A DNA stretch of 64,000 nt. It comes from Laetmonice hystrix (lineage: Eukaryota). Position 1 is the stretch's first letter. Every line of letters begins with the position of its first letter. Under the pieces are notes generated by a model. That model saw nothing but the letters and a program-made list of their open reading frames with translations, was not told the origin of the DNA and ran no database searches. Below, piece after piece: positions 999 to 62,912 of this stretch. Both the position numbers and the translations under genes were made by a program. The DNA is taken from the NCBI GenBank assembly GCA_965235115.1, contig OZ249447.1, positions 6,138,001 through 6,202,000 on the forward strand, written 5' to 3'.

Positions 999-1719
999 GC
1001 CAGCCCAAACACGAGTACGGCCCGACCTGTGGTCCACGTTGTCTGGACCATTCCAGCTCTGCCTCCCTGGGCGTCGACCCCAAACATCCCACTTTAATTA
1101 TGTGCTTTTACCATGCTCCAAAGGGCCACCGCCGTCTGTCTGGTCATGAAAATAGCTCAGGAAATTCAATTGTGGCTGGGTTGAGGTGTTTTCCTGCGGC
1201 CCTTCAACACTTAACAGGCAACATGTCGCTGGGGTCGATAAAGGGGCAGTCAGTCGGGCCAGTGCCACGTTGCTGTTTCAAGTAATAGATTTAGTTGTTT
1301 CGTTTTGTGCTAGTTGCAATTTTGTTCACTGCTTCTTGTAGTGAAAATCGGTAATGCTTTAATTCAGTTTCTGAATGGTCAGTACCGACTTGTTTGTAGT
1401 TATATTCTTTAGTTGGGATTTCTGAAAAGATATACATTTGAGCTTTCAATAATGGTGGAAGTGCTTAAATTTATAGCACTATTCAATAAAATGTGTTATG
1501 AAGAATTGTTTTAGGTCAATTCTGTGTGAGGCACAAGTCCTATAATGCCAACTACGGGTGTTCTTTATATAACAATAGAACATACCCTCGTTATTCTTGC
1601 TGATGAAAGGAGGGAAGGTTGATATGTCATTGGATAGTGAATGATGGACAGATTGGCCGTCGTCCAGAATACCATCTCATGGAACCATTGCTGGCCTTCG
1701 AGAATACTCACTGATCCAA

Positions 1720-3956
1720 CTCGGCGTGAGACACGCACCCTGTCCGTCTGACCAGCTGACTACAGTCCACCCGCTCACATCATGGGTCCGAATCCTTGTA
1801 CTCGCAGTGAGACACGCACCCTGTCCGCCGGGCCAACTGACTACAGTCCACCCGCTCACATCATGGGTCCGAATCCTTGTACTCGCAGTGAGACACGCAC
1901 CCTGTCCGCCGGGCCAGCTGACTACAGTGCTCACATCATGGGTCCGAATCCTTGTACTGGCAGTGAGACACGCACCCTGTCCGCCGGGCCAGCTGACTAC
2001 AGTGCTCACATCATGGGTCCGAATCCTTGTACTCGCAGTGAGACACGCACCCTGTCCGCCGGGCCAGCTGACTACAGTCCACCCGCTCACATCATGGGTC
2101 CGAATCCTTGTACTCGCAGTGAGACACGCACCCTGTCCGCCGGGCCAGCTGACTACAGTCCACCCGCTCACATCATGGGTCCGAATCCTTGTACTCGCAG
2201 TGAGACACGCACCCTGTCCGCTGGACCAGCTGACTACAGTCCACCCGCTCACATCATGGGTCCGAATCCTTGTACTCGCAGTGAGACACGCACCCTGTCC
2301 GCCGGGCCAGCTGACTACAGTCCACCCGCTGACATCATGGGTCCGAATCCTTGTACTCGGCGTGAGACACGCACCCTGTCCGCCGGGCCAGCTGACTACA
2401 GTGCTCACATCATGGGTCCGAATCCTTGTACTTCCAGTGAGACACGTACCCTGTCCGCCGGACCAGCTGACTAGAGTGCTCACATCATGGGTCCGAATCC
2501 TTGTACTCGCCCTGAGACACGCACCCTGTCCGCCGGGCCAGCTGACTACAGTCCACCCGCTGACATCATGGGTCCGAATCCTTGTACTCGGCGTGAGACA
2601 CGCACCCTGTCCGCCGGGCCAGCTGACTACAGTCCACCCGCTCACATCATGGGTCCGAATCCTTGTACTCGGCGTGAGACACGCACCCTGTCCGCCGGGC
2701 CAGCTGACTACAGTCCACCCGCTCACATCATGGGTCCGAATCCTTGTACTCGCAGTGAGACACGCACCCTGTCCGCCGGGCCAGCTGACTACAGTCCACC
2801 CGCTCACATCATGGGTCCGAATCCTTGTACTCGCAGTGAGACACGCACCCTGTCCGCCGGGCCAGCTGACTACAGTCCACCCGCTCACATCATGGGTCCG
2901 AATCCTTGTACTCGCAGTGAGACACGCACCCTGTCCGCCGGACCAGCTGACTACAGTCCACCCGCTCACATCATGGGTCCGAATCCTTGTACTCGCAGTG
3001 AGACACGCACCCTGTCCGCTGGGCCAGCTGACTACAGTCCACTCGCTCACATCATGGGTCCGAATCCTTGTACTCGCAGTGAGACACGCACCCTGTCCGC
3101 TGGGCCAGCTGACTACAGTCCACCCGCTCACATCATGGGTCCGAATCCTTGTACTCGCCCTGAGACACGCACCCTGTCCGCCGGGCCAGCTGACTACAGT
3201 CCACCCGCTCACATCATGGGTCCGAATCCTTGTACTCGCCCTGAGACACGCACCCTGTCCGCCGGACCAGCTGACTACAGTCCACCCGCTCACATCATGG
3301 GTCCGAATCCTTGTACTCGCCCTGAGACACGCACCCTGTCCGCTGGGCCAGCTGACTACAGTCCACTCGCTCACATCATGGGTCCGAATCCTTGTACTCG
3401 CCCTGAGACACGCACCCTGTCCGCCGGACCAGCTGACTACAGTCCACCCGCTCACATCATGGGTCCGAATCCTTGTACTCGCAGTGAGACACGCACCCTG
3501 TCCGCCGGACCAGCTGACTACAGTCCACCCGCTCACATCATGGGTCCGAATCCTTGTACTCGCAGTGAGACACGCACCCTGTCCGCCGGACCAGCTGACT
3601 ACAGTCCACCCGCTCACATCATGGGTCCGAATCCTTGTACTCGCAGTGAGACACGCACCCTGTCCGCTGGACCAGCTGACTACAGTCCACCCGCTCACAT
3701 CATGGGTCCGAATCCTTGTACTCGCAGTGAGACACGCACCCTGTCCGCCGGACCAGCTGACTACAGTCCACCCGCTCACATCATGGGTCCGAATCCTTGT
3801 ACTCGCAGTGAGACACGCACCCTGTCCGCTGGACCAGCTGACTACAGTCCACCCGCTCACATCATGGGTCCGAATCCTTGTACTCGCCCTGAGACACGCA
3901 CCCTGTCCGCTGGACCAGCTGACTACAGTCAACCCGCTCACATCATGGGTCCGAAT
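1720..3956. repeat. Tandem array, 81-bp unit (with 75-bp deletion variant) x ~28
   Basis: Unit gtgagacacgcaccctgtccgccgggccagctgactacagtccacccgctcacatcatgggtccgaatccttgtactcgca. About four units lack 6 bp. The 27-aa periodicity in the ORF track confirms the period. Confidence 0.97.
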
Positions 3957-4806
3957 TTTTTTATGAGAAGATACTTGAACGATGACCTTGACCCGAATGT
4001 CCACATCAGTTAATGTCGTCAGGAAACAACAAACAATAGCTGCCATGACACCACCAATCAGGGCCGCATGTAGCCAAACCCGCCACGGGCGCATTGAGCT
4101 TGGTAGAGGCACTTGTCTTTAGAAGAGAATCTCTATCACCTTTAACCCGGCCGCCCGTCTCGGCTAGGTACACCCGGAGGGGGTCAGAAGTGAGAGAGGC
4201 AAGAGATGCTGACGCCAAAGGAACCCGGCCAAGTACTCGGTGTTAATAAAGATCGCCATACCGCCTCTTACATCACCTAATTCTTCTGCTTGATGCCAGT
4301 ACCAAGTCCTTACTTGGATCATGTTTCAGTGCAGTCATCTCATATCTAGACAGTTTGAGGGAGGAATCACCCAAGGCATCGGTCCAACCATCAAATTTAC
4401 TACCTAGAATTGATAGCATCCAGGCACTAAATTACCAACCAACTTGGATGACCTTCAAAGAGCGTCTATTTGGAGGACGTAAAACTGTCTGTATGTTGTG
4501 TTTTTCAGTTCGTTTTTGAGAATGTCATACAGATTCAGGTTTTTCATGTCAGTTATCATATTCTGCTCGATGACATTATCGTAAGCCAAGAGTTTAGTGT
4601 ATGTCCAGTTCATTGAGGAAACACTCAGAGTTGGCATAAAGTAATAGTATTTACATGGTCGCTACCCTCCGTAACCCTCTCTCTCCCTCTCTCCCCCGTC
4701 TCTCTCCCTTGAATCACACGTGTGTTAATGCCGCAGAAGTGAGCATGTATATATGAGATCACATGTCCAAATACCACGAGTCCTAGGGCAGCTCCAGGGA
4801 CGTCAC

Positions 4807-16223: not shown

Positions 16224-16999
16224 TATAGGAAATGTAATATGGCTTGTATGGAGGAAGGTATGGTACTCTATGAATGGTCCGGGGAGGGGGCAATCGCACA
16301 CTGTTCTCTAAGTGGAATCAAAGGAACGGTTTATATAGGGAATGTAATATGGCTTGTATGGAGGAAGGTATGGTACTCTATGAATGGTCCGGGGAGGGGG
16401 CAATCGCACACAGTTCCATAAGTGGAATCAAAGGAACGGTTTATATAGGGAATGTAATATGGCTTGTATGGAGGAAGGTATGGTACTCTATGAATGGTCC
16501 GGGGGGTGAGGGGGCAATCGCACACAGTTCCATAAGTGGAATCAAAGGAACGGTTTATATAGGAAATCTAATATGGCTTGTATGGAGGAAGGTATCGTAC
16601 TCTATGAATGGTCCGGGGAGGGGCAATCGCATACTGTTCCATAAGTGGAATCAAAGGAACGGTTTATATAGGGAATGTAGTATGGCTTGTATGGAGGAAG
16701 GTGTGGTACTCTATGAATGGTCCGGGGAGGGGGGCAATTGCACACTGTTCCATAAGTGGAATCAAAGAACGGTTTATATAGGGAATGTAATATGGCTTGT
16801 ATGGAGGAAGGTATGGTACTCTATGAATGGTCCGGGGAGGGGCAATCGCACACAGTTCCATAAGTGGAATCAAAGGAACGGTTTATATAGGGAATGTAGT
16901 ATGGCTTGTATGGAGGAAGGTATGGTACTCTATGAATGGTCCGGGGAGGGGGGGGAGCAATCGCACACAGCTCCATAAGTGGAATCAAAGGAACGGTTT
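16224..16999. repeat. Tandem array, ~110-bp unit x ~7
   Basis: Unit atagggaatgtaatatggcttgtatggaggaaggtatggtactctatgaatggtccggggagggggcaatcgcacacagttccataagtggaatcaaaggaacggtttat, with a variable G-run. Confidence 0.95.
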
Positions 17000-17281
17000 T
17001 CCGTTTCCAGGAATCAGCCACTATTAATAGCTTTATGCGCGCAACCAGAACGATTGGAGATATTTATCAGTAGAGTCGGGTCAGATTTAGAATGAAAAAT
17101 GATGTGGAAGTCAAATCTTTCCATGACTGTGACCGAGATAGCGTGTACAAAACATTGACAGTCGGTGACATGTCATGGCAGGCATCCTGAACAGTACTAT
17201 TATGTTCCAGGATCAAGGCACTCAACATTTCAGCTTCCTACACCTTGAATTCAGGCTGGGCTAATAATGCATCTTCTCCCA

Positions 17282-17868
17282 GATTGTGATAGTGGGTCTG
17301 TGAACACTGCGGAAAGTAGTACGCCCTGTAGCTTGGTGATAGTGGGTCTGTGAACACTGCGGAAAGTAGTACGCCCTGTAGATTGGTGATAGTGGGTCTG
17401 TGAACACTGCGGAAAGTAGTACGCCCTGTAGCTTGGTGATAGTGGGTCTGTGAACACTGCGGAAAGTAGTACGCCCTGTAGATTGGTGATAGTGGGTCTG
17501 TGAACACTGCGGAAAGTAGTACGCCCTGTAGATTGGTGGTAGTGGGTCTGTGAACACTGCGGAAAGTAGTACGCCCTGTAGATTGGTGATAGTGGGTTTG
17601 TGAACACTGCGGAAAGTAGTACGCCCTGTAGAATGGTGATAGTGGATCTGTGAACACTGCGGAAAGTAGTACGCCCTGTAGATTGGTGATAGTGGGTCTG
17701 TGAACACTGCGGAAAGTAGTACGCCCTGTAGATTGGTGATAGTGGGTCTGTGAACACTGCGGAAAGTAGTACGCCCTGTAGATTGGTGATAGTGGGTCTG
17801 TGAACACTGCGGAAAGTAGTACGCCCTGTAGATTGGTGATAGTGGGTTTGTGAACACTGCGGAAAGTA
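17282..17868. repeat. Minisatellite, 50-bp unit x ~12
   Basis: Unit gattggtgatagtgggtctgtgaacactgcggaaagtagtacgccctgta. Confidence 0.96.
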
Positions 17869-20198
17869 GCAGAAGACTTAGGTTAATGAGGACGCTGAGA
17901 GGGGCCTTGTGTGGCAGGAACTTGTCCAATGATGTTAGGGTTCAGGGGTCAATAACAGGTGGTAGCGGCGATCCAGTTCTCTGGCACGCCATGTCTCTTT
18001 GATGGGATATAAAAGCAAGAAATCAAAGACACCACTATGGCGCAGTGTCATGCTCCCAATCTATGTTTTTCTTTGTGCGGTGTCGGAAGTTTATTGTGCT
18101 AACAAATCTATGATGGCTAACAACGAAAGCTGTGATGTGTAATTTGTGATTGAATAAGCCATGGTACATAGCCTTGTCCCAGGTGCTCTCCATTATAGAC
18201 ATAAGTATATTATTGCACACATTATGTTAAATCATGGCCGTGTGCTGACCTTCATAACTTTAGATCTGTATGGTTTAGTCAGAAACGTCTCATGAAGATG
18301 TACAACTTGCTGGCTGTCATAAACATCGAGGTCCACACCTCCCTTTCCGTCAGGACCCCTTCGTTAAAAGCTGTCAGAAGTACAGCTCTGCCGGCGACTG
18401 GGTTATCCTTTCAGTTTGATCTAGAATCATTGGAAGGAGGTTTGGTTGAACGTGTAGGAGGAACATGAAATATTAATCTAGGACCTCAGGAAAGTATGAA
18501 ATTGGGTGAACTGTTTGTTTGCTCCCCTTGAAACAGCAAGAAGGGATAAATATAAGGGTAGGTACCGTATTGACGCACTTTTAGGCGCGTGCGAATTTTA
18601 TGCGTTTTTTTAAAGGAAATTTCAAAATAAAAAATCGTCAGATATAGGTTGAGGTAACAGTTGCGGTGTTGATGCCTAATCCGAGATGTTTAGCCACAGT
18701 CCTGTGTGAGCCACCGTAACGATAGGGCCTGGCGATACTCCACCTCCGACACATTGAGTGATGCAGGTTAGAAGACGTTGCTATGGGTGACTGACTCTGT
18801 CATAGCCCTGGTTACGGAAGACCATAAGTCAGTGCACTTCCTGCCGGCCCCAGCCCAGCCAGCCGCCGTGCCCTGGCCGACCACTACCCGCATCCATCAT
18901 CAGCCCATGCAGGTGTGTGTACGGCAACGACCTTGAGGTCACCGAGGTGATCTATTACAAAACTGGAGGGCACGGCGGGCCAACCGACCCACAGCCACCC
19001 CCGGACCAACCCCGCATCACCTCCAAACTGCATTACTCGCAGCCGCTGCAAACTCTCTTGTTGACAGTGTGCCATGGCGGATAGGGGCAAACGTCCACGT
19101 GCTGAGCAATGGGCGTGGCGGCGCTGCCTGCTTGTCATTGGTACCGAATCAATCTTGTGTCTAGGCAGTCTTTTTCTGGTCTTTACTGCGCAGAGTTTGC
19201 CAACAGATGAATCTTCATAATGTACCAGAAGCATATAGACCAGTGGTCCAGCGTGAAGTATAGACAGGTTTTATAGGCAGTTGTTTCCATAGTAACCAGC
19301 AGTGCGGATGTAAGGTGGGAAGGGGAAGACGGTGAATTATGATGTCATTCATTATTACCAGGCAGTTTATTATTATTATGACGGGAACAGTTCACTTTGT
19401 AAAAAGGGTGCAGCACTGGGATGAACGTAGAAATAGTCGATGACGTCCCCATCCCGTCTGAAATGATGACATTGACACAAGATGTTTCAATGTGAATGGC
19501 TCTTTAATTCTGCATCTGATTTGAAGTACAACGGAACGTTTACATGCACTGTACACTTGTATCTCAGTCACTTTGAACCTAGATCCGTCTCGTATATCTG
19601 GGAATACCTTAGCGTCTACAAATGAAGCTGTATCCGTGTCACAAGAAAACTGGAATTAGCTACAACAGTGGATGAGCTCAATATCAAAGCTAGCAGAGGT
19701 CGGTTTCAGTGATAAATTACAAAGAAGGCTCTTTCAAAACGTTGACGTGATGGGCGTGATCTCCAGTGGCAACCGTTCGCCGAGACATTTATACCTGAAG
19801 CAAATAACAGAGTTCACAGTTGGGGCAGTACCAGCGTGAAAAGTGCTATAATTAAACATCTAGATTACGCCTCTTCCCTGCAGGTGGAAAAAGGAAGTTT
19901 CTGACATGATGAGAACTGATACTTAAACCTGAAGCAATCCAAACCTTTACGCCGGTCTCGCACAGATTTCGGCAGTTAAATACGGAGGTACTTGTTCTAC
20001 GTTAAGGAGAAGCTTGCAGTAATGTCATATTTACCTGCCCCCCCCCCCCCCCTCCCCGTTCTTTATACCCGCTGATCATCAGATTAGAATGCGGTTGGCA
20101 CTCTGTGAAAGGAAAGCCGTTTCACTCGGGAGAAGACCTGATAAATGCTGAATAATGGCGGCTAGTGCGTTATCTAGATTAATCTTTTCTTAGGCCTA

Positions 20199-22147: not shown

Positions 22148-22310
22148 GTATGGCGACATGGTACCCGCGACAATCATGGGAAAAATTGTAGGAGGTGTTT
22201 GCTCGCTCAGTGGCGTGTTGGTCATTGCGCTTCCAGTTCCTGTTATTGTGTCAAACTTCAGTCGAATATACCACCAAAATCAGCGTGCGGACAAACGCAA
22301 AGCACAGAAG
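22148..22310 (+). CDS. Shal: Shal/Kv4 potassium channel exon: end of pore signature, S6 and proximal C-terminus (163 nt, phase 2 to phase 0)
   Basis: tttgtag|G TAT GGC GAC ATG ... GCA CAG AAG|gtaagc. Translates (G)[54 protein letters not shown], with the (G)YGD selectivity filter, the PVP hinge and the Kv4-diagnostic [13 protein letters not shown]. Confidence 0.98.
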
Positions 22311-33465: not shown

Positions 33466-33720
33466 CCAGCGTTGTTCGTATTTCCTGTATAAAATGTTGG
33501 ATGATGTCCGAGAATTTGCATGTCATTGTGTAGGTCCTGGCATCCGTCTCCAATGGGCTGATACATTTTTTACGCTCAGTGTCTGACATTTAACCACTAG
33601 AGTATTCCATTTCTGGTTAAATGTTCCAGTTATTCACCTCGTATATCCCCAAACAATGAAATATTTCGTCACGACCATCGGACAGGGCCTACGTAGGCCC
33701 ATTTCTATGTTAGTGCAACG

Positions 33721-36243
33721 AGCCCCTGGATCATACTGTCTGTCACACACCGTCCCTCGCTCATACTGTCTATCACACACCATCCCTACAACGTATCCTC
33801 TGTCACACACCATCCCTGGATCATACTGTCTATCACACACCATCCCTGCATCATACTGTCTATCATACACCATCCCTGCATCATACTGTCTATCACACAC
33901 CATCCCTGGATCATACTGTCTATCACACACCATCCCTAGATCATACTCTCTCTCATACACCATCCCTGGATCATATTGTCTATCACACACCATCCCTGGA
34001 TCATACTGTCTATCACACACCATCCCTGCATCATACCGTCTATCACACACCATCCCTGGATCATACTGTCTATCACACACCATCCCTGGATCATACCGTC
34101 TATCACACACCATCCCTGGATCATACTGTCTATCACACACCATCCCTGGATCATACTGTCTATCACACACCATCCCTGAATCATACTGTCTATCACACAC
34201 CATCCCTGGATCATACTGTCTATCATACACCATCCCTAGATCATACTGTCTGTCACACACCATCCCTGGATCATACTGTCTATCACACACCGTCCCTGGA
34301 GCATACTGTCTATCACACACCATCCCTGGAGCATACTGTCTATCACAAACCATCCCTGGATCATACCGTCTATCATACACCATCCCTGGATCATACTGTC
34401 TATCACACACCGTCCCGGCATCATACTCTCTATCACACACCATCCCTGGATCATACTGTCTATCACACGCCATCCCTGGATCATACTGTCTATCACACAC
34501 CATCCCTGGATCATACTGTCTATCATACACCATCCCTGGATCATACTGTCTATCACACACCATCCCTGAATCATATTGTCTATCACACACCATCCCTGGA
34601 TCATACTGTCTATCACAAACCATCCCTGGATCATACTGTCTATCACACACCATCCCTGGATCATACTGTCTATCACACACCATCCCTGGATCATACTGTC
34701 TATCACACACCATCCCCGGATCATACTGTCTATCATACACCATCCCTGGATCATACTGTCTATCACACACCGTCCCTGGATCATACTGTCTATCACACAC
34801 CATCCCTGGATCATACTGTCTATCACACACCATCCCTGGATCATACTGTCTATCATACACCATCCCTGGATCATACTGTCTATCACACACCATCCCTGGA
34901 TCATACTGTCTATCACACACCATCCCTGGATCATACTGTCTATCATACATCATCCCTGCATCATACTGTCTATCACACACCATCCCTGGATCATACTGTC
35001 TATCATACACCATCCCTGGATCATACTGTCTATCATACACCATCCCTGCATCATACTGTCTATCATACATCATCCCTGCATCATACTGTCTATGATACAC
35101 CATCCCTGTATCATACTGTCTATCATACACAAACCCTGGATCATACTGTCTATCACACACCATCCCTGGATCATACTGTCTATCACACACCATCCCTGGA
35201 TCATACTGTCTATCATACACCATCCCTGCATCATACTGTCTATCACACACCATCCTTGGATCAGACTCTCTCTCATACACCATCCCTGGATCATACTGTC
35301 TATCACACACCATCCCTGGATCATACTGTCTATCATACACCATCCCTGGATCATACTGTCTATCACACACCATCCCTGGATCATACTGTCTATCACACAC
35401 CATCCCTGGATCATACTGTCTATCACACACCATCCCTGGATCATACTGTCTATCATACACCATCCCGGCATCATACTGTCTATCACACACCATCCCTGGA
35501 TCATACTGTTTATCACACACCATCCCTGAATCATACTGTCTATCACACACCATCCCTGGATCATACTGTCTATCACACACCATCCCTGGATCATACTGTC
35601 TATCATACACCATCCCTGCATCATACTGCCTATCATACACAAACCCTGGATCATACTGTCTATCATACACCATCCCTGGATCATACTGTCTATCACACAC
35701 CATCCCTGGATCATACTGTCTATCACACACCATCCCTGAATCATACTGTCTATCACACACCATCCCTGGATCATACTGTCTATCATACACCATCCCTGAA
35801 TCATACTGTCTATCACACACCATCCCTGCATCATACTGTCTATCACACACCATCCCTGGATCATACTGTCTATCACACACCATCCCTAGATCATACTCTC
35901 TCTCATACACCATCCCTGGATCATATTGTCTATCACACACCATCCCTGGATCATACTGTCTATCACACACCATCCCTGGATCATACGGTCTATCACACAC
36001 CATCCCTGGGTCATACTGTCTATCACACACCATCCCTGGATCATACTGTCTATCACACACCATCCCTGGATCATACTGTCTATCACACACCATCCCGGCA
36101 TCATACTGTCTATCACACACCATCCCTGGATCATACTGTCTATCACACACCATCCCTGGATCATACTGTCTATCACACACCATCCCTGGATCATACTGTC
36201 TATCACACACCATCCCTGGATCATACTGTCTATCACACGCCGC
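33721..36243. repeat. Minisatellite, 30-bp unit x ~84
   Basis: Unit catccctggatcatactgtctatcacacac. It stays in register with the 60-nt lines throughout, so there are no indels. Confidence 0.98.
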
Positions 36244-38929
36244 CCATGGATCCTTGGATGCAGTATCTCTGGATCGCAATCATCTCAGGAACAAACAACG
36301 TGTGCCACATTAACTCGAGGTATTATATTCACTATCGTACATCAACCCATCATAATCCTGTTTGCATTACTGTTTGCATCAGCTATTCTCATGGTTTATA
36401 ACTATACCACACATTATTAAATTAAAAGCTTTGAAAGCATTGAAAATACGTCGGTGCTAGTCTAGCAGACTATCGTATTATCTGGTGTCTCGTTTTCTCT
36501 TTCTTTTCTTGCCAAGAGTCTCGAGTCTAACTTGCTTGTGGGCGTTTGAAATGTTCCACAGCATTCAGGAGTTAACCTACTTGTATATCAACATCGATTT
36601 GTTCAACTTACAGTGGACTTTGAATTACACGCTTCCTGGAGTCTGGAAATCTCATTCGAGAAGGTGTATGCCTTTTTTGCTCTATACGGACACTTTGGTA
36701 TTTCAGCTGGTACCTCAAAGTAAAAAAAAACCCTTGACATAGACACTGCGTACACGATGGAAAATTGTTCCTCTTGCCACACGAGCTATGTCCGCCAATG
36801 CGTTTCCGGCTGACAGAGCGATCTCTTCGTCATAATATTACTAATAATGAATTCTCCAAAACATAAATGTAGCTCTCACGGGTGACATGTTTGCATATCC
36901 TGAAGTAGCAGAGTATATTATATGAGAAACGGGAACGAAATCTTTGTGGAACTCCAAGGGAAACCTTGTGTTTTTGTTGGGATTAAATGTTGTTATTTCC
37001 TTATCTGCGGGGTGCACACATACAGGTGTTAATCAATCCTAGTTCACCCACCCGCCCAGACTCGGCCTATCGGGGTTCTATTATGGTATCTGCCATGTGC
37101 CATCCGCACGCTGATTGATGCGATTTGGAAGATCCGATTTGGAAGATAAAAACGTTTAATAATTATCATAAAACGAATGTTTTGTTATAAGAAGAGACGT
37201 TGATTGCTGTAGAGTGTGCGAGTTTTGTATCAGTAATTGAATTGCCTTCAGGAAATGTACATACTAGAAATACATTTGTAATTTTATTATGGGATCAAAA
37301 ATAATGTCTTTTTCACCAAATACTGTTGGATAGGCTTAACTTGTATAATTTGTAAGTCCGTTGACGCACACAACAAATATAATTCATTATTATGAAGGAA
37401 ATTAAGTTTAGATCTATCCCACTGGATTGATATATTTGTATAGTGTCATGAACAGCCAACCTGGATTATTCACGTCAGCTTTGGAGTACCGACATCCTAC
37501 ACATTCAACATGAACTACCTCACATGTCAAAGATAAAGATTTCCTTAAAATATAAACCACTGTCTAAAGCAGATCCTTTAATGAATCCCTCTGGTGTTGA
37601 CTGAACGATAGAACAGGCCCACTGCATCCCAAGGCCGTCGTGTGGGGTATCTAAGGGCGTTCTCATCTATTCTCTGTTAATATCTAATCCCTATCAATCA
37701 TCAGTATCATCGTCTCCCCTGACGCCGGCCTACATGTCCTGTCATCAGGACACCCGTCCGGTTACAACGAATGTGTCCACGTCCTGGAGAAGGCTTACGG
37801 TTGCCAAGAAGGCGCAAACCCACCACTCTCTAACTTGGTATCACGTTAGAAGTATGTTTATTTGATAGGGTGGTGGTAACAGCAGCTTTAACATGAAAAT
37901 CTCCAGCTAGGTCAGACGGAGCTGGGTGGAGTGACGGTGTGACGTGACGAGCTACGTCCGTACCACAGCCTGACGACAACGTCGAGCAGACGACTGTCCG
38001 GAACGGTTGGCGGGGACCGTCATCGATCTGCAGACCGGAAGCCGGGAGTGGCGGCAGGGTGGGGTTGGGCGGTGGAGGGGGGGGGGGAGGTGTGTATGGT
38101 GACGTCTTTGGTGAACCTCCAGGGACTTTGTTAGACAGTCCTCTATGAGCGTTTGGTCGGCAAAAGACGGCCACCTCAGACGTCACACTGATTTATGGTA
38201 AGGTACGCCTCTAAGTACCAAGTTGAGAGTCGGATGATGCGTTTGAACACCTTAGAACCACATTTTGTAGTTGTGATTGTGTGATACAATCCCTCCAGGA
38301 TTGTATCCTCAGCATCATAGGTTTTTCCCATGTTAATACTGCACAATTATTCAGGTGACGAAAGCATGGGTGGACCTGGCATCTAAATATGTTATTAAAT
38401 TCACACAGCCAGATTCATTTGGCACCGTTTAGGGTTTACGAGTAGAGATGGGTGGAAAAGTTGCGAGAATTAAAGCACAATAGTTTCAAAAGTTAGCCCC
38501 ATTGGTTACCTTCGCCTGCCAAGGTCATTATTTTAAAGTTCTTCCTCACTGATTCTGCTCCATTTCCTTATAAAAGCAAGTATTGTGTTTCACCTACTGG
38601 AAATGTGCCAACCAAGAGACCCTATTTTAAGGAAATAAACGTCCACCGACACCGCCTTAGTGGTGTGGATAAATAGAATAAATTCTCCATGACAATGGCA
38701 ACATGATATGATATGGCCACTGTATGTTGATAATGTATTCTTCATGCAGCATTGGCCACATCAGGCATTGATCATTTCAACGGGCGAGATAACCTTTCCA
38801 GATGAAGAAAAGGTGGGCATAAATCCAGCTCTGAAGATGCTTATCCGAAATGCAGTTTACCACAGAAAAGGCGTTTATTCGGTTGCCTCGGCAAGTAATG
38901 GACGGGGTAGGGAGGGTTCAATTGAGGTG

Positions 38930-41658: not shown

Positions 41659-42084
41659 TAAGGAAGGTTTTTATATGTTATATCGTACATGTCCATAGTA
41701 CTCCAAGAATCGCCGTTTGATTGCCTCCGTGGGCATTTAGGTTCTTTTTTTCCATGAATGGATGTTTTTTGAAAGTTTGGACGACACAGTCAGCACATGA
41801 GCCCATCACCAGACTCGGTGCCAAGAATGGCGATAAAACCACGAACAGCGTTCGGACCGGGTATTTTGGCAGCCGGTTGTGTACCATGTAGAAAATTACA
41901 AAGTAGTGCTGCATGGAGGAAGCTATGTAAACGGCCTGGAAAAAGGTGTATCCAACAACATTTTGACACGAGACTGTTTTTTTATGCTGGTGTTTTGATG
42001 AACGCTGTGAAGATAACAGGTGGTTGAAAACTTTGATGAGACAAAAATAGCAACAGGCTCAGAATCATGAGGCTTCAGCGCAAG

Positions 42085-42212
42085 NNNNNNNNNNNNNNNN
42101 NNNNNNNNNNNNNNNNNNNNNNNNNNNNNNNNNNNNNNNNNNNNNNNNNNNNNNNNNNNNNNNNNNNNNNNNNNNNNNNNNNNNNNNNNNNNNNNNNNNN
42201 NNNNNNNNNNNN
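42085..42212. other. Assembly gap (128 N)
   Basis: Run of N. True intron length and content here are unknown. Confidence 0.99.
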
Positions 42213-44901
42213 CACGATCCAGGATCCTTTGGTTGACAGCCAACTCCTAGCTGTTGGTACATTCAGCTTTGGCAGCTGCAGAAAAACCAGGTACAATCAG
42301 GAGAATTACATACAAGCACAGACTGGGATTATCGAGGTGCTCTGGCATGTTGCAAGCCTATTTCCACTGCTGCCAGACTTCATAGTCTCCCGTCACAATG
42401 GTTTATTAACTCCCATTAGCCTTTTTAACCCTAACGTTATATTAAATTATCCTTGCTATCATTGTACCAGTAATATTTTACTTGTCTTGAATGTCTAAGG
42501 AGATGTATGTACGAAAGCATGGTTGCCATTCGAATGGCCGTGTTGTAATGCAGTCCAGCCTAATGGCCCAGCCAAGCAGCCGTCTGACTCTCACTGACCC
42601 CTGGCAATTTGGGAGACCTATGCCTTCGACATTGGAGCTGTGACAGTGTCACTTAACCTAACACTCTGACCGTACAGACTGACTGCTACTGTGGACCCTC
42701 CAGGGTGGAAACATCGTGATCTATGTCAGAGAAACGGATGGCTGTCCGCACATAGATTGTTGGCTTTCTACTTGTGAAACTTTACCCAAGGGTCAAAATG
42801 GTCGAACTTGGCGGCCATTGCAGCAGCGTCCTGTGATCACTCGTTGCCTTCCTCCAGTCTCCTCCTGTCTTCTTTCTATCCTCCTCCAGCGTGAGCCGGC
42901 CACAGACAATCACCAGACGATGCCACCAGCTTACACAGCCAAGTCAAGGGCCGCACAGTGCCGACGCTGTTGTCATGGTAACATTAGTATCTGCCCCCCG
43001 TATAAAGCCGTGGCATCATTGCAGCAAGTCTGCCATCTACCACAGCAAAGCCCATATCAGTCTAACGAGACAAATGTGTTGCCATGACAACAACAGATTC
43101 CATTGTGGAATGCTAATGTGAGAATGCAGAGATTTGATGAAATTTTGATGTTGGAAAGGAAAATGGCAACGAGTTGCTTTGAGATTGCACAGGCATTGGC
43201 CGTGTGTCCTGTGTGAGGGGGACTAACAGTTCATGGAACCGCCACCTGATATAACGGAACACCTGGCGGAGGGGGTCGCAGATTGGTAGAATATCTTAAC
43301 CTCCACATTGTCCGGAGTCTAACGTGGGCAGTAAATATGTAATTGGGCAATTGTTTTGCTAAAGAATTCATTTAAGAGCATTCTGAATTGGCCTGTGCTG
43401 CCAAAACAGTTGGGACATAGCATTGTGGAGATCTGGTGAACCCATTGCTCTTTAAGCTGCATGGGCGTGTTTGGGCTAAGCTGCCCGAGGCATTCATCCC
43501 CATGCCAACGTCCATCAGGTGGACGGCCCTGCATCCTCTGCAACCCCCGCCCCTACCTCACCCCCACCACTGTGTCAGTCAGGTCTGACCAACCCCCGCC
43601 CCTACCTCACCCCCATTCTACACTGCATTGGTTTATCCTAGCACCAGATAGCATCCTTGCGCAAAGAAGTTCATCTTTCAATATCCATAATTTTTGTCCA
43701 TTTGTAAGTGACCTGATGCACATGAGTGTAAGCGGTTAGGAAACAAAAGCACTCGGAAGCTCCATGCTACCATAATTGTTACAATGAACAAAAGTGGTTG
43801 CAACTCGGTATCTGTGCAGGTTCTGACTAAATACAGGAAATCTGGGTTTAGGCGTTTGGTGGGGGGTGGTCTTTAAAATCAAGGTGAGCCCTTCAGTGTT
43901 GGCAGTCGTGTCGGATCTCCAGGCAACACTGGCCCAGACTCTGCAGTCGATGGTAGCCTTGCCGGAACCATGGCACCAGGAGCCTATCAGGTTCTATGAG
44001 AATCATCTCCCCAGACAGGTAATAAAAACTGCATGGTACTCACAGCTCCCTCGAGTCACGAAACTCCCTGGCGTTTTTATGCCGTAGAGATTGATTTCTA
44101 AATTTCTAACCAATGTTGTTTTGGCCAAATGAGGTCGGTGATTGGGGAATCAGGAAGCACCAGCTTTCCATTTCAAGATAATTGGTCCGGATATGCTATG
44201 ATACTTCTACATTCATTATACCAAACAAATACGCATAAATTAGCTACCTCTGTACCTAAAATACCAACAGCTATAGATGCACGATTATGTCAATTCACAC
44301 TTCATAGAAAAGTAGGAAATAACAACCTTAGGCCCTGTAAGATTTAATATAGCACATAATGGAATGGAAGTCTGCGATTTGAGATGGACACCTCCCTGAG
44401 ACGATTCATCCCCTGAGGAGTGCCCGACGGTCGGCTGTCCACAGTCTCCCGCTGTGTATTAACCCGTTAAGCAGCCCGGATTGAAGGGGATAGGGCGGCT
44501 GCTGACACAGGATCTGTCGTGATCGACCTGAGATCCCCTAGCGGCAGACTTAGACATGGCCGGCCTCCAGGGGCTCATTGCGATGCCGGATCAGATGACA
44601 GATCACTCGCCGATTGACGGCGGGGCTCTCCCTCACCGGTCTCACGGGTCACTGATCAAATGGGACACCGTAACTTATTACACTTTCCGGGAGTTTATCG
44701 GCGGACAGCGACAGAGCCAAGTGTTTGCAGGACTTCAGGTTAACTGCTCGTCTTCTGTCTGCTGTCACAAAGAGGAACTCTCTTCAAGGCACCGCGCAGA
44801 GATTGAGAGGACGGTGGAGGAAAAGTACAAAAGTCTTACGATTACAGAAAGCAGTTTACAGTCCTTGTCATTGCTAGAATATATCGGGGCTATACTGAGT
44901 A

Positions 44902-57346: not shown

Positions 57347-57778
57347 AAGGACGCCTCGGTAATATCGCCATTTTTCAAACCTGACTCCATTATATCGGGT
57401 GATAGAAATGGGCGGGTAGAGCAGTCATTTTACACCGTACATACACAGCTATAGGTCGTGCAAACTGTGCCGCCCCGATAACTCTGTCACAGCTCTAACA
57501 TCTGTCTGAACGCGTACACCAGCAGGCAAGAGACAGAAACCAAGACCGTTTGGTGTCCCGATGGAGCCGTAATAAACACTCGATGATAAAAGGACAGCAG
57601 TTAGGCCGGGTTATTAAACACAACTGGAGATATTGCTGTGGAGACGATAAGTTATTTACAGATAGAACAGGGTGACGTTTCAAGGAGATTTACGGCAACA
57701 TATTTCAGTGACGATATTGTCAAAGCCACCCTTTCCACCCCACCCCCGCTAAATTTATGCTTTTTCTTGTTTTTACAG

Positions 57779-57967
57779 AAAGCGCGTCTTGCGCGAATAC
57801 GGATGGCGAAGAATTCTGCAGGGGCCGCGTTCCTGAACAGCAAGAAGAAAATGGAGGAGAGAATGGCTGCCAGGGAAAGTGGTCTAGAAGTTAATGCAGA
57901 TCTCAAGGACGGCGATGTCTTTGAGCTTCAACACCATCATTTGCTCACCTGCCTCGAAAAGACTACA
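57779..57967 (+). CDS. Shal: Shal/Kv4 exon: cytoplasmic C-terminus with the conserved dileucine motif (189 nt, phase 0-0)
   Basis: ttttacag|AAA GCG CGT ... AAG ACT ACA|gtaagt. Translates KARLARIRMAKNSAGAAFLNSKKKMEERMAARESGLEVNADLKDGDVFELQHHHLLTCLEKTT, matching Kv4 KARLARIR and FExQHHHLLxCLEKTT. Confidence 0.97.
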
Positions 57968-58889
57968 GTAAGTACATTAATGGAAGGGGGCGGGGGAATT
58001 GGCGGCAGTGCTTGGCAGCGCGTATTGAGGTGGCCTATCATTGTCCACAAGGACTGACCATCAGGGATTTCCAATGGTGGTTTATGATAGAGTAGGCAGT
58101 GGTCGCAAGACGTGAAACATATTCCGAATATATACATGTGAACACGACAGGACATCCTCAAAGTTACTAATTATTATTACAGTGACCGTCTATTTGTTCC
58201 TTAATGAGTACAAGTCTAATTAGCATCATTGTTAATCGTAGTAAACAATAGTTTTCACGTTTAAACCTGATAGTTATAGGCACCCGTCAGATTGGTTTCG
58301 TTCCAAGACTTAAAGTGTTTACATGACTTTGTAACACGAAGTCTTGTGACTAGAAATTAACCCACACGGTTCACGTAACAGAGATTGTATCACTTTTCGC
58401 ATTGGTTTGTCGAAGATGTTTCCTTTCATTGACACTGTGCACAACGTGGCTTTGATTCACCTAGGATATCAAAGCATACATTCGTTTCTAGGATGAATGG
58501 GACTCCATACTCGACTTTGCATCATTTTCAATGTTTCACGACACCTTTATTGTTTACAGCACTAAACCAGTAAAGTTTACTTTGGTAAGCGGAAGAAAGT
58601 TTTAATTTTCGCTTTCGACATTCCAGTTGACTAGAGTAAAAACTAACAAAAGAAAAATTCTAATAAAACTCCTAAAGCTCTTCAAGATGTATTCCTGCAG
58701 TCTGAAATTCAGGACCCCAAGACTGTCTTTCATCGTGAAGAAGGTCAAAGATGAAACCTTTTTGTTTTACAAATGACTGACCGCAAGGACAGTATGCACT
58801 GCTGCTTCCACACGGTCTGGCTTGGCGTGAACATTGTCCTTAATGGCTCTGTGTAGGTGACCCATATGTCCTCCCTGTCCTCTGTTCAG

Positions 58890-58949
58890 GACGAGGACGT
58901 GTTCCATCTTCAGCACCATCACTTGCTCAATTGCCTTGAGAAGGTTACA
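58890..58949 (+). CDS. Shal: Putative alternative Shal exon (60 nt, phase 0-0) encoding a duplicate dileucine motif
   Basis: ctccctgtcctctgttcag|GAC GAG GAC GTG TTC CAT CTT CAG CAC CAT CAC TTG CTC AAT TGC CTT GAG AAG GTT ACA|gtgagt = DEDVFHLQHHHLLNCLEKVT. It is 16/20 aa identical to the last 20 codons of the preceding exon. Confidence 0.85.
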
Positions 58950-60675
58950 GTGAGTATTCTTGCTTGTAGTTACACATAGGAGATGCGAGTTGCGCAATGT
59001 AGAAAACGCTAGAGCACTTGACTCCCTCGCGGAAGCAGTCCTTCCGTCCCCCCTAGATGAAGAGCTCCGACACAAGAAACCAGTTGTTCCAACCTCTACC
59101 TATGTGACACTATCATGCAACTTTAGTGACTTTTTAACTGTCAGTGTTTAAATCGTCCATGACCTGTTTTTTACTCTTCAGGTAGTTGGGTGTTCATGGT
59201 GATAGACTTACTGTATTGTGGTTAATTTTGGAGTGACGAGTTATTGCCAAAGAGAAATCCGTATAGCAATCGCAGGTCGATTGTGAACACTTTCCCTGAT
59301 GGTCAGTACTTGGATGTGTCTGGCGTTAACCGTTCACAGAGTTTTTGTAGTGGTCATCGAACCTTTAGGCCTACGTTACGTATCTTACATTATCTTGGTG
59401 AAGTTTGTCGTTCTAATCTCGGTGTCGAGCTCGCTACCCGTAAAGTACGGTCACTAAGTTACGAAACGTGAACACCTAGGGAGTTGTCATATTCCCTTAT
59501 CTCCAGTCGTTTGCTTTGTTCTGAGTTAGTCATATCTACCCCCGTTTTTCACCTTCCATTTTTCTCTCCGCTCCTAACAAGCACCTAATATCTCTAAAGA
59601 GCGTAGGTAAACACGTAATATCGCAGATGTTTCTTAAGAAAATCCGCATGAAGGCCTGAAAATAGACAACGTGCGATAAAAAACAAACTTGCAGTGACAA
59701 TTTCCCTGATGCATGTTTCGATTTTTCTGTGTATGCTTGCATGTTACTTCATCTCTGTGGATTCATACACCTTTGAGAAATGTTTTATTGGTGTGTTTAC
59801 TGTGGCATTTTGACATTCGTATCTTTTGAGAAAGCAGGGCAGGTACTGGTGATTTTAACGAACGGACTGTTTATGGTAATCTCAGATAGTTTTGACAGAA
59901 ATTTAATGTCTTCTATATCTGATCCGGCCAAAGTTCCAACAATTCACATTTAAAATGTTTACTGACAAAAATCAGAGGATTCTATTATTGTGTAGGAATA
60001 TTCTTGTTCTACGACAAGAAAGTATTTGGTGATCATTTGACAGATTATAGTCTTACGGTTTACAATAATAGTTTCCGAGTGTTGGACAGTGTTGGTGAAG
60101 ACCCTTATAGTAATAATAGTCTTATTGTCTTTAGCTGACTTTACAATAGTTGTCTTCATTAATATTATTATTATTATTACCATTATTATTCACTTTCACT
60201 ATTATTCTCATTATGATTTTCCACAAATAACGTTAAACGTTGTCGTTATACATTTTCAGGGCGCTTCAGGTATCGACAGCAATATGTTATTTTCATAGGC
60301 TCTGTCTTCTGGATGCAATGTTGCTGATGACTATTTATGTCGTAACAAGGGCAGGTTTAACCTAGTTTATATAATAGTGTATGTACCTAGTGTATATGAC
60401 AATATTAGGGTTATTGTGGGAATGTGTGTGTATGAACGCTGCAGAGCCAGACGGACAGAGACGTCATCAAACAAAAGGTTACCCAGATAACTTAGATTTG
60501 TCAGGACTACCTTTACGTGGTGGCGCGCGACCGAGGAGGAATATTAATATTGGTTTCGAAACAGCAGAGCGCAAGTATACAGTAGACCCACTTTTTATAC
60601 CAAACATGCGCGCGCCCCTTGCCCATGTACGCTGGCACCAAATCCGTTTTATATTGGCGTTTCTTTTTCCAACAG

Positions 60676-60828
60676 GAACGAGAATTTGTCGATATGGACA
60701 TGCCCTACAACGGGGCGGCTAGTAAACCGTCGAACACCCCGCCATTGACGCCCAGTCCTTCCATTACCTCACTGCACGACCGGCGTTCGGGATGCTGCGC
60801 GCGCAGGCCATCCCACCGCAAGTATCAG
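60676..60828 (+). CDS. Shal: Shal/Kv4 exon: distal C-terminus (153 nt, phase 0-0)
   Basis: ttctttttccaacag|GAA CGA GAA TTT ... AAG TAT CAG|gtacgt. Translates EREFVDMDMPYNGAASKPSNTPPLTPSPSITSLHDRRSGCCARRPSHRKYQ, matching the (D/N)(R/H)EFV... and CCxRR motifs that follow LEKTT in Kv4 channels. Confidence 0.93.
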
Positions 60829-60851: not shown

Positions 60852-62912
60852 ATGACTGTTGGATCCCGTTCATGATGTGGCCGGCCTGGCCTCCTCACAG
60901 ACCTGTAAGACTGTTGGATCCGGTCAGGCGTCACTCTGGATGGGGCTGGCCTGGCCTCCTCACAGACCTGGTAGTTTGTTGGGGGGCCGGCCTGGCCTCC
61001 TCACAGATCTGGTAGTTTGTTAGGGGGCCGGCCTGGCCTCCTCACAGACCTGGTAGTTTGTTGGGGGGCCGGCCTGGCCTCCTCACAGACCTGATGTTTG
61101 TTGGGGGGCCGGCCTGGCGTCCTCACAGATCTGATGTTTGTTGGGGGGCCCGCCTGGCCTCCTCACAGACCTGGTAGTTTGTTAGGGGGCCGGCCTGGCC
61201 TCCTCACAGACCTGGTAGTTTGTTGGGGGGCCGGCCTGGCCTCCTCACAGACCTGGTAGTTTGTTGGGGGGGGGGGGGGCGGCCTGGCCTCCTCACAGAC
61301 CTGATGTTTGTTGGGGGCCGGCCTGGCCTCCTCACAGACCTGGTAGTTTGTTGGGGGCCGGCCTGGCCTCCTCACAGACCTGGTAGTTTGTTGGGGGGCC
61401 GGCCTGGCCTCCTCACAGACCTGGTAGTTTGTTAGGGGGCCGGCCTGGCCTCCTCACAGACCTGGTAGTTTGTTAGGGGGCCGGCCTGGCCTCCTCACAG
61501 ACCTGGTAGTTTGTTAGGGGGCCGGCCTGGCCTCCTCACAGACCTGGTAGTTTGTTGGGGGGCCGGCCTGGCCTCCTCACAGACCTGGTAGTTTGTTCGG
61601 GGGCCGGCCTGGCCTCCTCACAGACCTGATGTTTGTTGGGGGCCGGCCTGGTCTCCTCACAGACCTGGTAGTTTGTTGGGGGGGGGGCGGCCTGGCCTCC
61701 TCACAGACCTGATAGTTTGTTGGGGGGCCGGCCTAGCCTCCTCACAGACCTGGTAGTTTGTTGGGGGGCCGGCCTGGCCTCCTCACAGACCTGGTAGTTT
61801 GTTCGGGGGCCGGCCTGGCCTCCTCACAGACCTGGTAGTTTGTTCGGGGGCCGGCCTGGCCTCCTCACAGACCTGATGTTTGTTGGGGGCCGGCCTAGCC
61901 TCCTCACAGACCTGGTAGTTTGTTAGGGGGCCGGCCTAGCCTCCTCACAGACCTGGTAGTTTGTTAGGGGGCCGGACTGGCCTCCTCACAGACCTGATGT
62001 TTGTTGGGGGGCCGGCCTGGCCTCCTCACAGACCTGGTAGTTTGTTAGGGGGCCGGCCTAGCCTCCTCACAGACCTGGTAGTTTGTTAGGGGGCCGGCCT
62101 GGCCTCCTCACAGACCTGGTAGTTTGTTGGGGGGCCGGCCTGGCCTCCTCACAGACCTGGTAGTTTGTTCGGGGGCCGGCCTGGCCTCCTCACAGACCTG
62201 ATGTTTGTTGGGGGGCCGGCCTGGCCTCCTCACAGACCTGGTAGTTTGTTGGGGGCCGGCCTGGCCTCCTCACAGACCTGGTAGTTTGTTGGGGGGCCGG
62301 CCTGGCCTCCTCACAGACCTGGTAGTTTGTTGGGGGGGCCGGCCTGGCCTCCTCACAGACCTGGTAGTTTGTTGGGGGGCCGGCCTGGCCTCCTCACAGA
62401 CCTGGTAGTTTGTTGGGGGGGCCGGCCTGGCCTCCTCACAGACCTGGTAGTTTGTTAGGGGGCCGGCCTAGCCTCCTCACAGACCTGGTAGTTTGTTAGG
62501 GGGCCGGCCTAGCCTCCTCACAGACCTGGTAGTTTGTTAGGGGGCCGGCCTGGCCTCCTCACAGACCTGGTAGTTTGTTGGGGGGCCGGCCTGGCCTCCT
62601 CACAGACCTGGTAGTTTGTTCGGGGGCCGGCCTGGCCTCCTCACAGACCTGATGTTTGTTGGGGGCCGGCCTGGCCTCCTCACAGACCTGGTAGTTTGTT
62701 GGGGGGCCGGCCTGGCCTCCTCACAGACCTGGTAGTTTGTTGGGGGGCCGGCCTGGCCTCCTCACAGACCTGGTAGTTTGTTGGGGGGCCGGCCTGGCCT
62801 CCTCACAGACCTGGTAGTTTGTTGGGGGGGCCGGCCTGGCCTCCTCACAGACCTGGTAGTTTGTTGGGGGGCCGGCCTGGCCTCCTCACAGACCTGATAG
62901 TTTGTTGGGGGG
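60852..62912. repeat. GC-rich tandem array, ~42-bp unit x ~47, preceded by two longer proto-units
   Basis: Unit ggccggcctggcctcctcacagacctggtagtttgttggggg with a variable G-run. It begins ~25 nt after the Shal donor site. Confidence 0.96.

Follow-up and report, generated by a model that had tools for sequence, protein, structure and literature searches.

A second copy of the Shal dileucine and KChIP-docking motif in a candidate cassette exon of the Kv4 gene of Laetmonice hystrix

The dileucine motif located in the C-terminus of Shal (Kv4) channels is reportedly a dendritic-targeting element (Rivera et al. 2003). In the structure of Kv4.2 with KChIP1, the motif helix and the NHEFVD loop that comes after it form the segment S472-D495, which occupies a crevice that KChIP1 forms with the neighbouring N-terminus, and the linker of residues 451-471 is disordered (Kise et al. 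2021, PMC8566240). Residues F474, H478-H480, L481/L482, L485 and E486 of this helix are contacts to KChIP1 or S6, or targeting residues, and the double substitution L482A/L485A alters KChIP modulation (PMC8566240).

The best-described splice variant next to this helix is Kv4.3L, the long isoform of mammalian KCND3, in which a 19-residue cassette follows residue 487 (PMC5296356). This exon weakens the augmentation by KChIP2b and slows inactivation, and the insert alters the modulation of the channel by KChIP2b and by KCNE (PMC5296356). An earlier note on the DNA described here had placed its candidate exon at the position of this insert, and rightly so, as both stand at the same phase-0 junction after LEKTT. 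The same note regarded the use of this junction outside mammals as undescribed, a view contradicted by annotated isoforms of Haliotis, Mytilus, aphid, Artemia and tick. In Haliotis and Mytilus (P0043, P0081, P0089, P0092, P0097), the DREFVD exon is skipped and LEKTT is joined to the following exon, while one Mytilus isoform has a 14-aa alternative exon, IKQIQDCNRKTNTM, in place of the DREFVD exon; the EFVD loop, which is a KChIP contact in Kv4.2, is therefore optional in these molluscs. Shal isoforms of aphid, Artemia and tick diverge after LEKTT as well, a statement that concerns the point of divergence only, and lobster Shal has the named splice forms 1.a-g. The LEKTT junction is thus a splicing switch point in protostomes.

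A further described system is the birth of exons by duplication. Alternative exons are reported to arise by tandem exon duplication, and short exons recently born in this way are usually alternative (Kondrashov & Koonin 2001; Letunic, Copley & Bork 2002). In this work, we describe a segment of the Laetmonice hystrix genome that shares features with each of these systems and is, in our assessment, probably a real coding exon born of a partial exon duplication, as its sequence and its splice signals suggest.

The DNA analysed here, called the window, is a stretch of 64,000 nt, whose plus strand carries the 3' two-thirds of a Shal/Kv4 gene. The features of the gene are collected in Table 1.

Table 1. 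Exons, introns and signals of the Shal/Kv4 gene of Laetmonice hystrix around the duplicated motif (positions within the window unless another reference is given)
Feature	Position	Strand	Remarks
Shal exon 1	G000:C13:6045423, ~92.5 kb upstream of window		N-terminus, T1 domain, S1 to pore start
Pore/S6 exon (G-YGDMVP...KRKAQK)	22148..22310	+	From the ORF list; acceptor tag, donor gtaagc
LEKTT exon (KARLARIR...LEKTT), 63 codons	57779..57967	+	Donor gtaagt; PF11879 positions 3-20
Motif copy 1, DGDVFELQHHHLLTCLEKTT	57908-57967	+	Final 60 nt of the LEKTT exon
Intron between LEKTT exon and cassette, 922 nt	57968..58889	+	Final ~21 nt are the cassette polypyrimidine tract and AG
Candidate cassette exon (motif copy 2), DEDVFHLQHHHLLNCLEKVT, 60 nt, phase 0	58890..58949	+	PF11879 25.7 bits, positions 2-20
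Cassette donor GTGAGT	58950..58955	+	
Intron downstream of cassette	58956..60675	+	Two TGCATG sites (59710, 59738); AT-rich microsatellite near 60160
Next exon, EREFVDMDMPYNG...HRKYQ	60676..60828	+	DUF3399 continued, profile positions 22-65; bears the EFVD loop

The gene belongs to the Shal/Kv4 (KCND) family. The start of exon 1 encodes the Shal N-terminal segment (Pfam profile match to PF11601, 54.6 bits), and the whole exon is 79-98% identical to Shal proteins bearing PF11601, PF02214 and PF00520, with annelid and nemertean proteins as the best named matches (85%). The LEKTT exon, which bears the FxxQHHHLLxCLEKTT motif, has 90% amino-acid identity with the orthologous exon of another genome, L004. 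In the 627-Mb genome of Laetmonice hystrix, the DUF3399 profile (PF11879) matches solely the end of the LEKTT exon and the cassette, in each case from profile position 2 or 3 to 20. Since these matches are confined to the two motif copies, the locus is the sole Shal/Kv4 gene of the genome, with the motif present twice. The KChIP-binding segment at the Shal N-terminus is conserved and intact in exon 1, which suggests that an interaction with a KChIP-like subunit may exist in this species.

The gene covers more than 155 kb, from exon 1 to past the end of the window, with introns of ~93 kb and 35 kb, while the orthologous post-LEKTT introns in the other sampled genomes measure just 0.7-1.7 kb. 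Long minisatellite arrays with units of ~45-70 nt occupy parts of its introns (1677-4112, 16274-17929, 33634-36420, and 60880-61400 and beyond) and give rise to spurious long ORFs on both strands; one array begins only ~50 nt past the donor of the exon that bears the EFVD loop. A run of N, either an assembly gap or masked sequence, lies at ~41950-42240, within the 35-kb intron.

When the two copies are compared, 45/60 nt are identical. Nine of the 20 codons are the same, seven differ synonymously and four carry a replacement, and the nucleotide differences are distributed over codon positions 1:2:3 as 2:3:10. The encoded peptides share 16/20 residues, with no indels and no stops. The similarity is confined to the 60 nt and the donor consensus, and the flanks cannot be aligned; copy 2 is followed by GTGAGT and intron-like sequence, with no sequence of the next exon. 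In these respects the earlier note was accurate: its translations of both 20-mers and phase 0 at both junctions are exact, a recount returned its codon tally, the flanking introns are indeed dissimilar, and the segment does lie 922 nt downstream of the LEKTT donor, between a polypyrimidine acceptor and a GTGAGT donor, with the next exon at 60676. An antisense ORF across this region (58767-59075) has no Pfam match.

A window so rich in minisatellites, and with a run of N in it, could raise the suspicion that the second copy is an artefact of assembly or collapse, or a mobile element or retrocopy carrying a Shal fragment. The evidence at the DNA level speaks against this. Contigs of three DNA runs, all from one sample, are colinear across 57700-60088 and contain no joints; run searches with a 3.2-kb stretch and with the 189-nt LEKTT exon by itself matched these DNA-type runs and no RNA run. 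Between 58220 and 60423, the contigs show some 13 allelic differences (SNPs and small indels), every one of them in the two introns; the three exons have none, but given how short they are, this distribution does not inform on the 60-nt segment. The colinear contigs and the intronic position of the allelic differences argue that the cassette is no assembly artefact. The copies themselves differ at 15/60 nt. The 651 nt around the cassette are single-copy, matching only themselves in the genome, which rules out carriage by a mobile element. Because copy 2 runs into an intron-like GTGAGT flank and not into the next exon, the duplication was genomic and the segment is no mRNA-derived retrocopy. 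Tested against the contigs, the single-copy flanks and the intron-like 3' flank, this reading was rejected, and we consider it extremely improbable.

The divergence between the copies gives an indication of age and constraint. Synonymous sites are near saturation (pS = 0.73 by the Nei-Gojobori method, 8.5 differences over 11.7 sites), and the duplication is, judging by these sites, old. In comparison, pN is 0.13, with dN/dS ~0.06 over the 20 codons, and Fisher's test against dN = dS gives p 1.6e-4, a value obtained on 20 codons with about 12 synonymous sites. Additionally, a neutral copy was simulated, with copy 1 accepting synonymous changes only and copy 2 drifting, under the condition of 13-17 nt differences in total, which allows for the fact that copy 2 was noticed through its similarity. 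Four or fewer replacements and no stop were seen in 0.4-0.5% of trials (p ~0.005), the mean being ~8 replacements. The proposal of an old, selected duplication, made in the earlier note, is thus borne out by the contrast between pS and pN, by Fisher's test and by the simulation, for a comparison of 20 codons.

The positions of the differences are informative as well. The replacements in copy 2 correspond to about 471/472, 475, 483 and 488 in Kv4.2 numbering, and F474, H478, H479, H480, L481/L482, L485 and E486 are all kept. Every Kv4.2 residue reported as a KChIP1 contact, together with the dileucine, is therefore retained in copy 2.

The cassette is flanked by signals expected of an exon, namely an AG with a polypyrimidine tract, a GT donor, a frame-keeping length of 60 nt and phase 0 at both ends. 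The acceptor reads ...tcctccctgtcctctgttcag directly before the exon, and the donor gtgagt directly after it. The polypyrimidine tract has 16/18 pyrimidines, a score reached by just 0.18% of the 3788 AGs on the plus strand of the window, and the tracts of the neighbouring exons are weaker (15/18 and 13/18). The donor fits GTRAGT, a pattern to which 0.48% of the GT dinucleotides of the same strand conform. A possible branch point, ggtgAcc, is found ~29 nt upstream of the acceptor, with no AG between them. Both splice sites coincide exactly with the edges of the similarity between the copies.

Two Rbfox-type UGCAUG hexamers occur on the plus strand at 59710-59715 and 59738-59743, 28 nt apart, at a distance of 760-790 nt past the cassette. 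No other plus-strand copy occurs in the 55-64 kb part of the window, and the hexamer is unenriched window-wide, with 50 found against 56 expected.

The manner in which a second copy could enter the mRNA was also considered. Inspection of the LEKTT exon sequence revealed no plausible GT for an internal donor upstream of copy 1; the sole phase-0 candidate, GAA followed by GTTAAT, is very weak, and a swap of copies by this route was rejected. As there is no usable internal donor before copy 1, inclusion of the cassette must yield a tandem repeat of the motif and not a mutually exclusive swap. The locus resembles exons of tandem-duplication origin in having a nearby tandem copy of a coding exon segment, in frame and with its own splice sites. 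In the classic cases, entire exons of the same length are duplicated and used in a mutually exclusive manner, whereas here just the 3' third of the exon (60/189 nt) was kept. A mutually exclusive pair is also at odds with the lengths of 189 and 60 nt and with the lack of a phase-matched donor-like GT before copy 1.

Comparison with other genomes places the cassette in a single lineage. It is absent from the complete homologous LEKTT-DREFVD intron of L004 (1546 nt), L009 (679 nt) and L010 (1677 nt), genomes taken to be spiralian from their Shal sequences. The earlier note had suggested a tblastn-type check for conservation of the cassette in related genomes, and in these three whole introns the check turned out negative. 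In the L004 intron, a weak tblastn match interrupted by two stops was considered as a decayed relic of the cassette and dismissed, its alignment scores being no better than those of shuffled introns. When the 40-aa ORF that surrounds the cassette was used to search for orthologues, no candidate emerged, short ORFs being rarely called. The absence of the cassette from the whole intron of three other spiralians indicates its restriction to the Laetmonice hystrix lineage. Copy 2 is identical to its own copy 1 at 45/60 nt, versus 38 and 35 to copy 1 of L004 and L005, which fits an origin inside this lineage.

Between exon 1 of Laetmonice hystrix and that of the relatives available for comparison (L006 and the run project of L004), pS is 0.74-0.76, saturated like the 0.73 between the copies. 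With these relatives at synonymous saturation, the duplication may simply postdate the divergence from the sampled relatives. A clearly closer relative is represented by ENA ERZ26222911 (P0002, P0121), with amino-acid identities of 98% for exon 1 and 92% for the LEKTT exon.

Among proteins, a tandem double-motif Shal was found in 0/349 sampled proteins and ORF fragments, and a second motif copy in none of the 120 Shal proteins retrieved via exon 1. In a set of 120 ORFs of the LEKTT exon, P0145 alone has a double motif match, and an exhaustive phmmer search with the 63-aa LEKTT exon against 1.84 billion representatives likewise returned only P0145 with two matched stretches. This sequence comes from L005:10121-10290 (ENA ERZ25069853, ctg28881l), where a separate tandem duplication of ~108 nt covers the end of the LEKTT exon and the start of the intron. 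In the second copy, QHHHLLSCLKKV, 6 nt are deleted and the donor has become GTGTGC; it has the look of a relic in decay, although use as an alternative donor is conceivable. The case of L005, another animal, shows that duplications at the end of the Shal LEKTT exon do occur and usually decay, whereas the Laetmonice hystrix copy is undecayed.

These observations bear on the reading in which the segment is an unexpressed relic or pseudo-exon, its frame, motif and splice-like flanks being kept by chance, and is never spliced or spliced only as noise. It draws its strength from the absence of the cassette in three other spiralians and in 349 Shal proteins and fragments, from the visible decay of the independent L005 duplicate, and from the fact that the statistics rest on just 60 nt. 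Chance preservation, however, would have to account for synonymous sites close to saturation next to 16/20 retained residues, including every functional one, for the result of the conditional simulation, for a copy free of indels and stops, and for an acceptor in the top 0.2% of AGs and a consensus donor, each placed precisely where the similarity ends. We therefore hold a relic to be somewhat unlikely. The age of the duplication, the constraint on copy 2, the retained residues and the splice signals, taken together, make protein-level selection, and hence inclusion in mRNA, the best reading; such selection on copy 2, and with it use as an exon, is likely.

A used exon could still be constitutive, so that both motif copies would be present in every Shal mRNA and no choice between one and two motifs would exist. 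The strength of its signals is compatible with this, since the cassette tract surpasses those of the neighbouring constitutive exons and the donor matches GTRAGT; moreover, nothing at the locus argues for regulated skipping. On the other side stand the general tendency of short, recently duplicated exons to be alternative and the alternative splicing of the post-LEKTT junction in molluscs, arthropods and mammals. Constitutive use appears to us rather unlikely.

According to the explanation that we favour, a real coding exon born of a partial exon duplication, the final 60 nt of the LEKTT exon and its donor were tandemly duplicated at the DNA level. Copy 2 would then have gained its own acceptor and been retained as a small in-frame coding exon. 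Its inclusion would produce a channel reading ...LEKTT-DEDVFHLQHHHLLNCLEKVT-EREFVD..., in which the helix of copy 2, instead of that of copy 1, would adjoin the EFVD loop, so that a complete docking segment would be restored, though changed at three positions on its surface. In turn, copy 1 would be shifted 20 residues back into the flexible linker and could serve there as a spare dileucine/KChIP helix. We infer from the sequence that the cassette is probably spliced in and that its inclusion may be regulated; by analogy with the Kv4.3L insert, the effect would concern modulation by a KChIP-like subunit, dendritic sorting, or both.

In its relation to the Kv4.2 docking segment, copy 2 has F, QHHHLL and CLEK and would sit directly before the EFVD loop. 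It departs from the Kv4.2 motif in having H for E at 475, N at 483 and V for T at 488, and in that it would co-occur with a first copy 20 residues upstream. Like the Kv4.3L exon, the cassette is short, keeps the reading frame and is inserted at a phase-0 junction common to both, between LEKTT and xxEF(V/I)D. The insert of Kv4.3L, GLSYLVDDPLLSVRTSTIK, has an unrelated sequence and holds no copy of the motif; compared by eye, the cassette peptide and the Kv4.3L peptide (PMC5296356) show no similarity, and the insertion point alone is common to them. In the Laetmonice hystrix cassette it is the motif helix that is repeated, and the cassette, a candidate exon known from DNA, is of independent, lineage-specific origin. 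The isoforms of Haliotis, Mytilus, aphid, Artemia and tick use the same junction as a switch point but insert no second motif.

The earlier note saw in the duplicated segment a trafficking motif. The role in targeting stands, but the description is incomplete, as the helix also docks KChIP1 and the N-terminus (PMC8566240). Since the Kv4.3L exon at the LEKTT junction alters KChIP2b modulation, an effect of the cassette on beta-subunit modulation seems at least as likely as a choice of "one or two trafficking motifs". More tentatively, and as a possibility that we would not presume, insertion of the cassette might bring about a helix swap. The variant helix (H475, N483, V488) would take the place in the KChIP/N-terminus crevice, while the original helix would become a free second dileucine/KChIP site, and the isoforms would differ not only in dendritic sorting but also in modulation or stoichiometry at the level of the beta subunit.

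Alternative splicing after LEKTT outside mammals is already known, and what appears to be new here is the duplication of the motif within a Shal gene. To our knowledge, no Shal channel has so far been reported to achieve isoform diversity of the Kv4.3L kind through motif duplication. Should the cassette be unused, it would represent an unusually well-preserved relic; if it is used, it would be a clean case of a new exon born from partial exon duplication. In the latter case, it would also provide a natural two-copy version of the 16-residue element of the Kv4 C-terminus that targets channels to dendrites and clamps KChIP. One-copy and two-copy isoforms could then serve as probes of motif dosage in sorting, of the choice of helix by KChIP and of the role in gating of the spacing between the S6 helix and the docking helix, questions raised by the work on Kv4.3L and by the cryo-EM structures.
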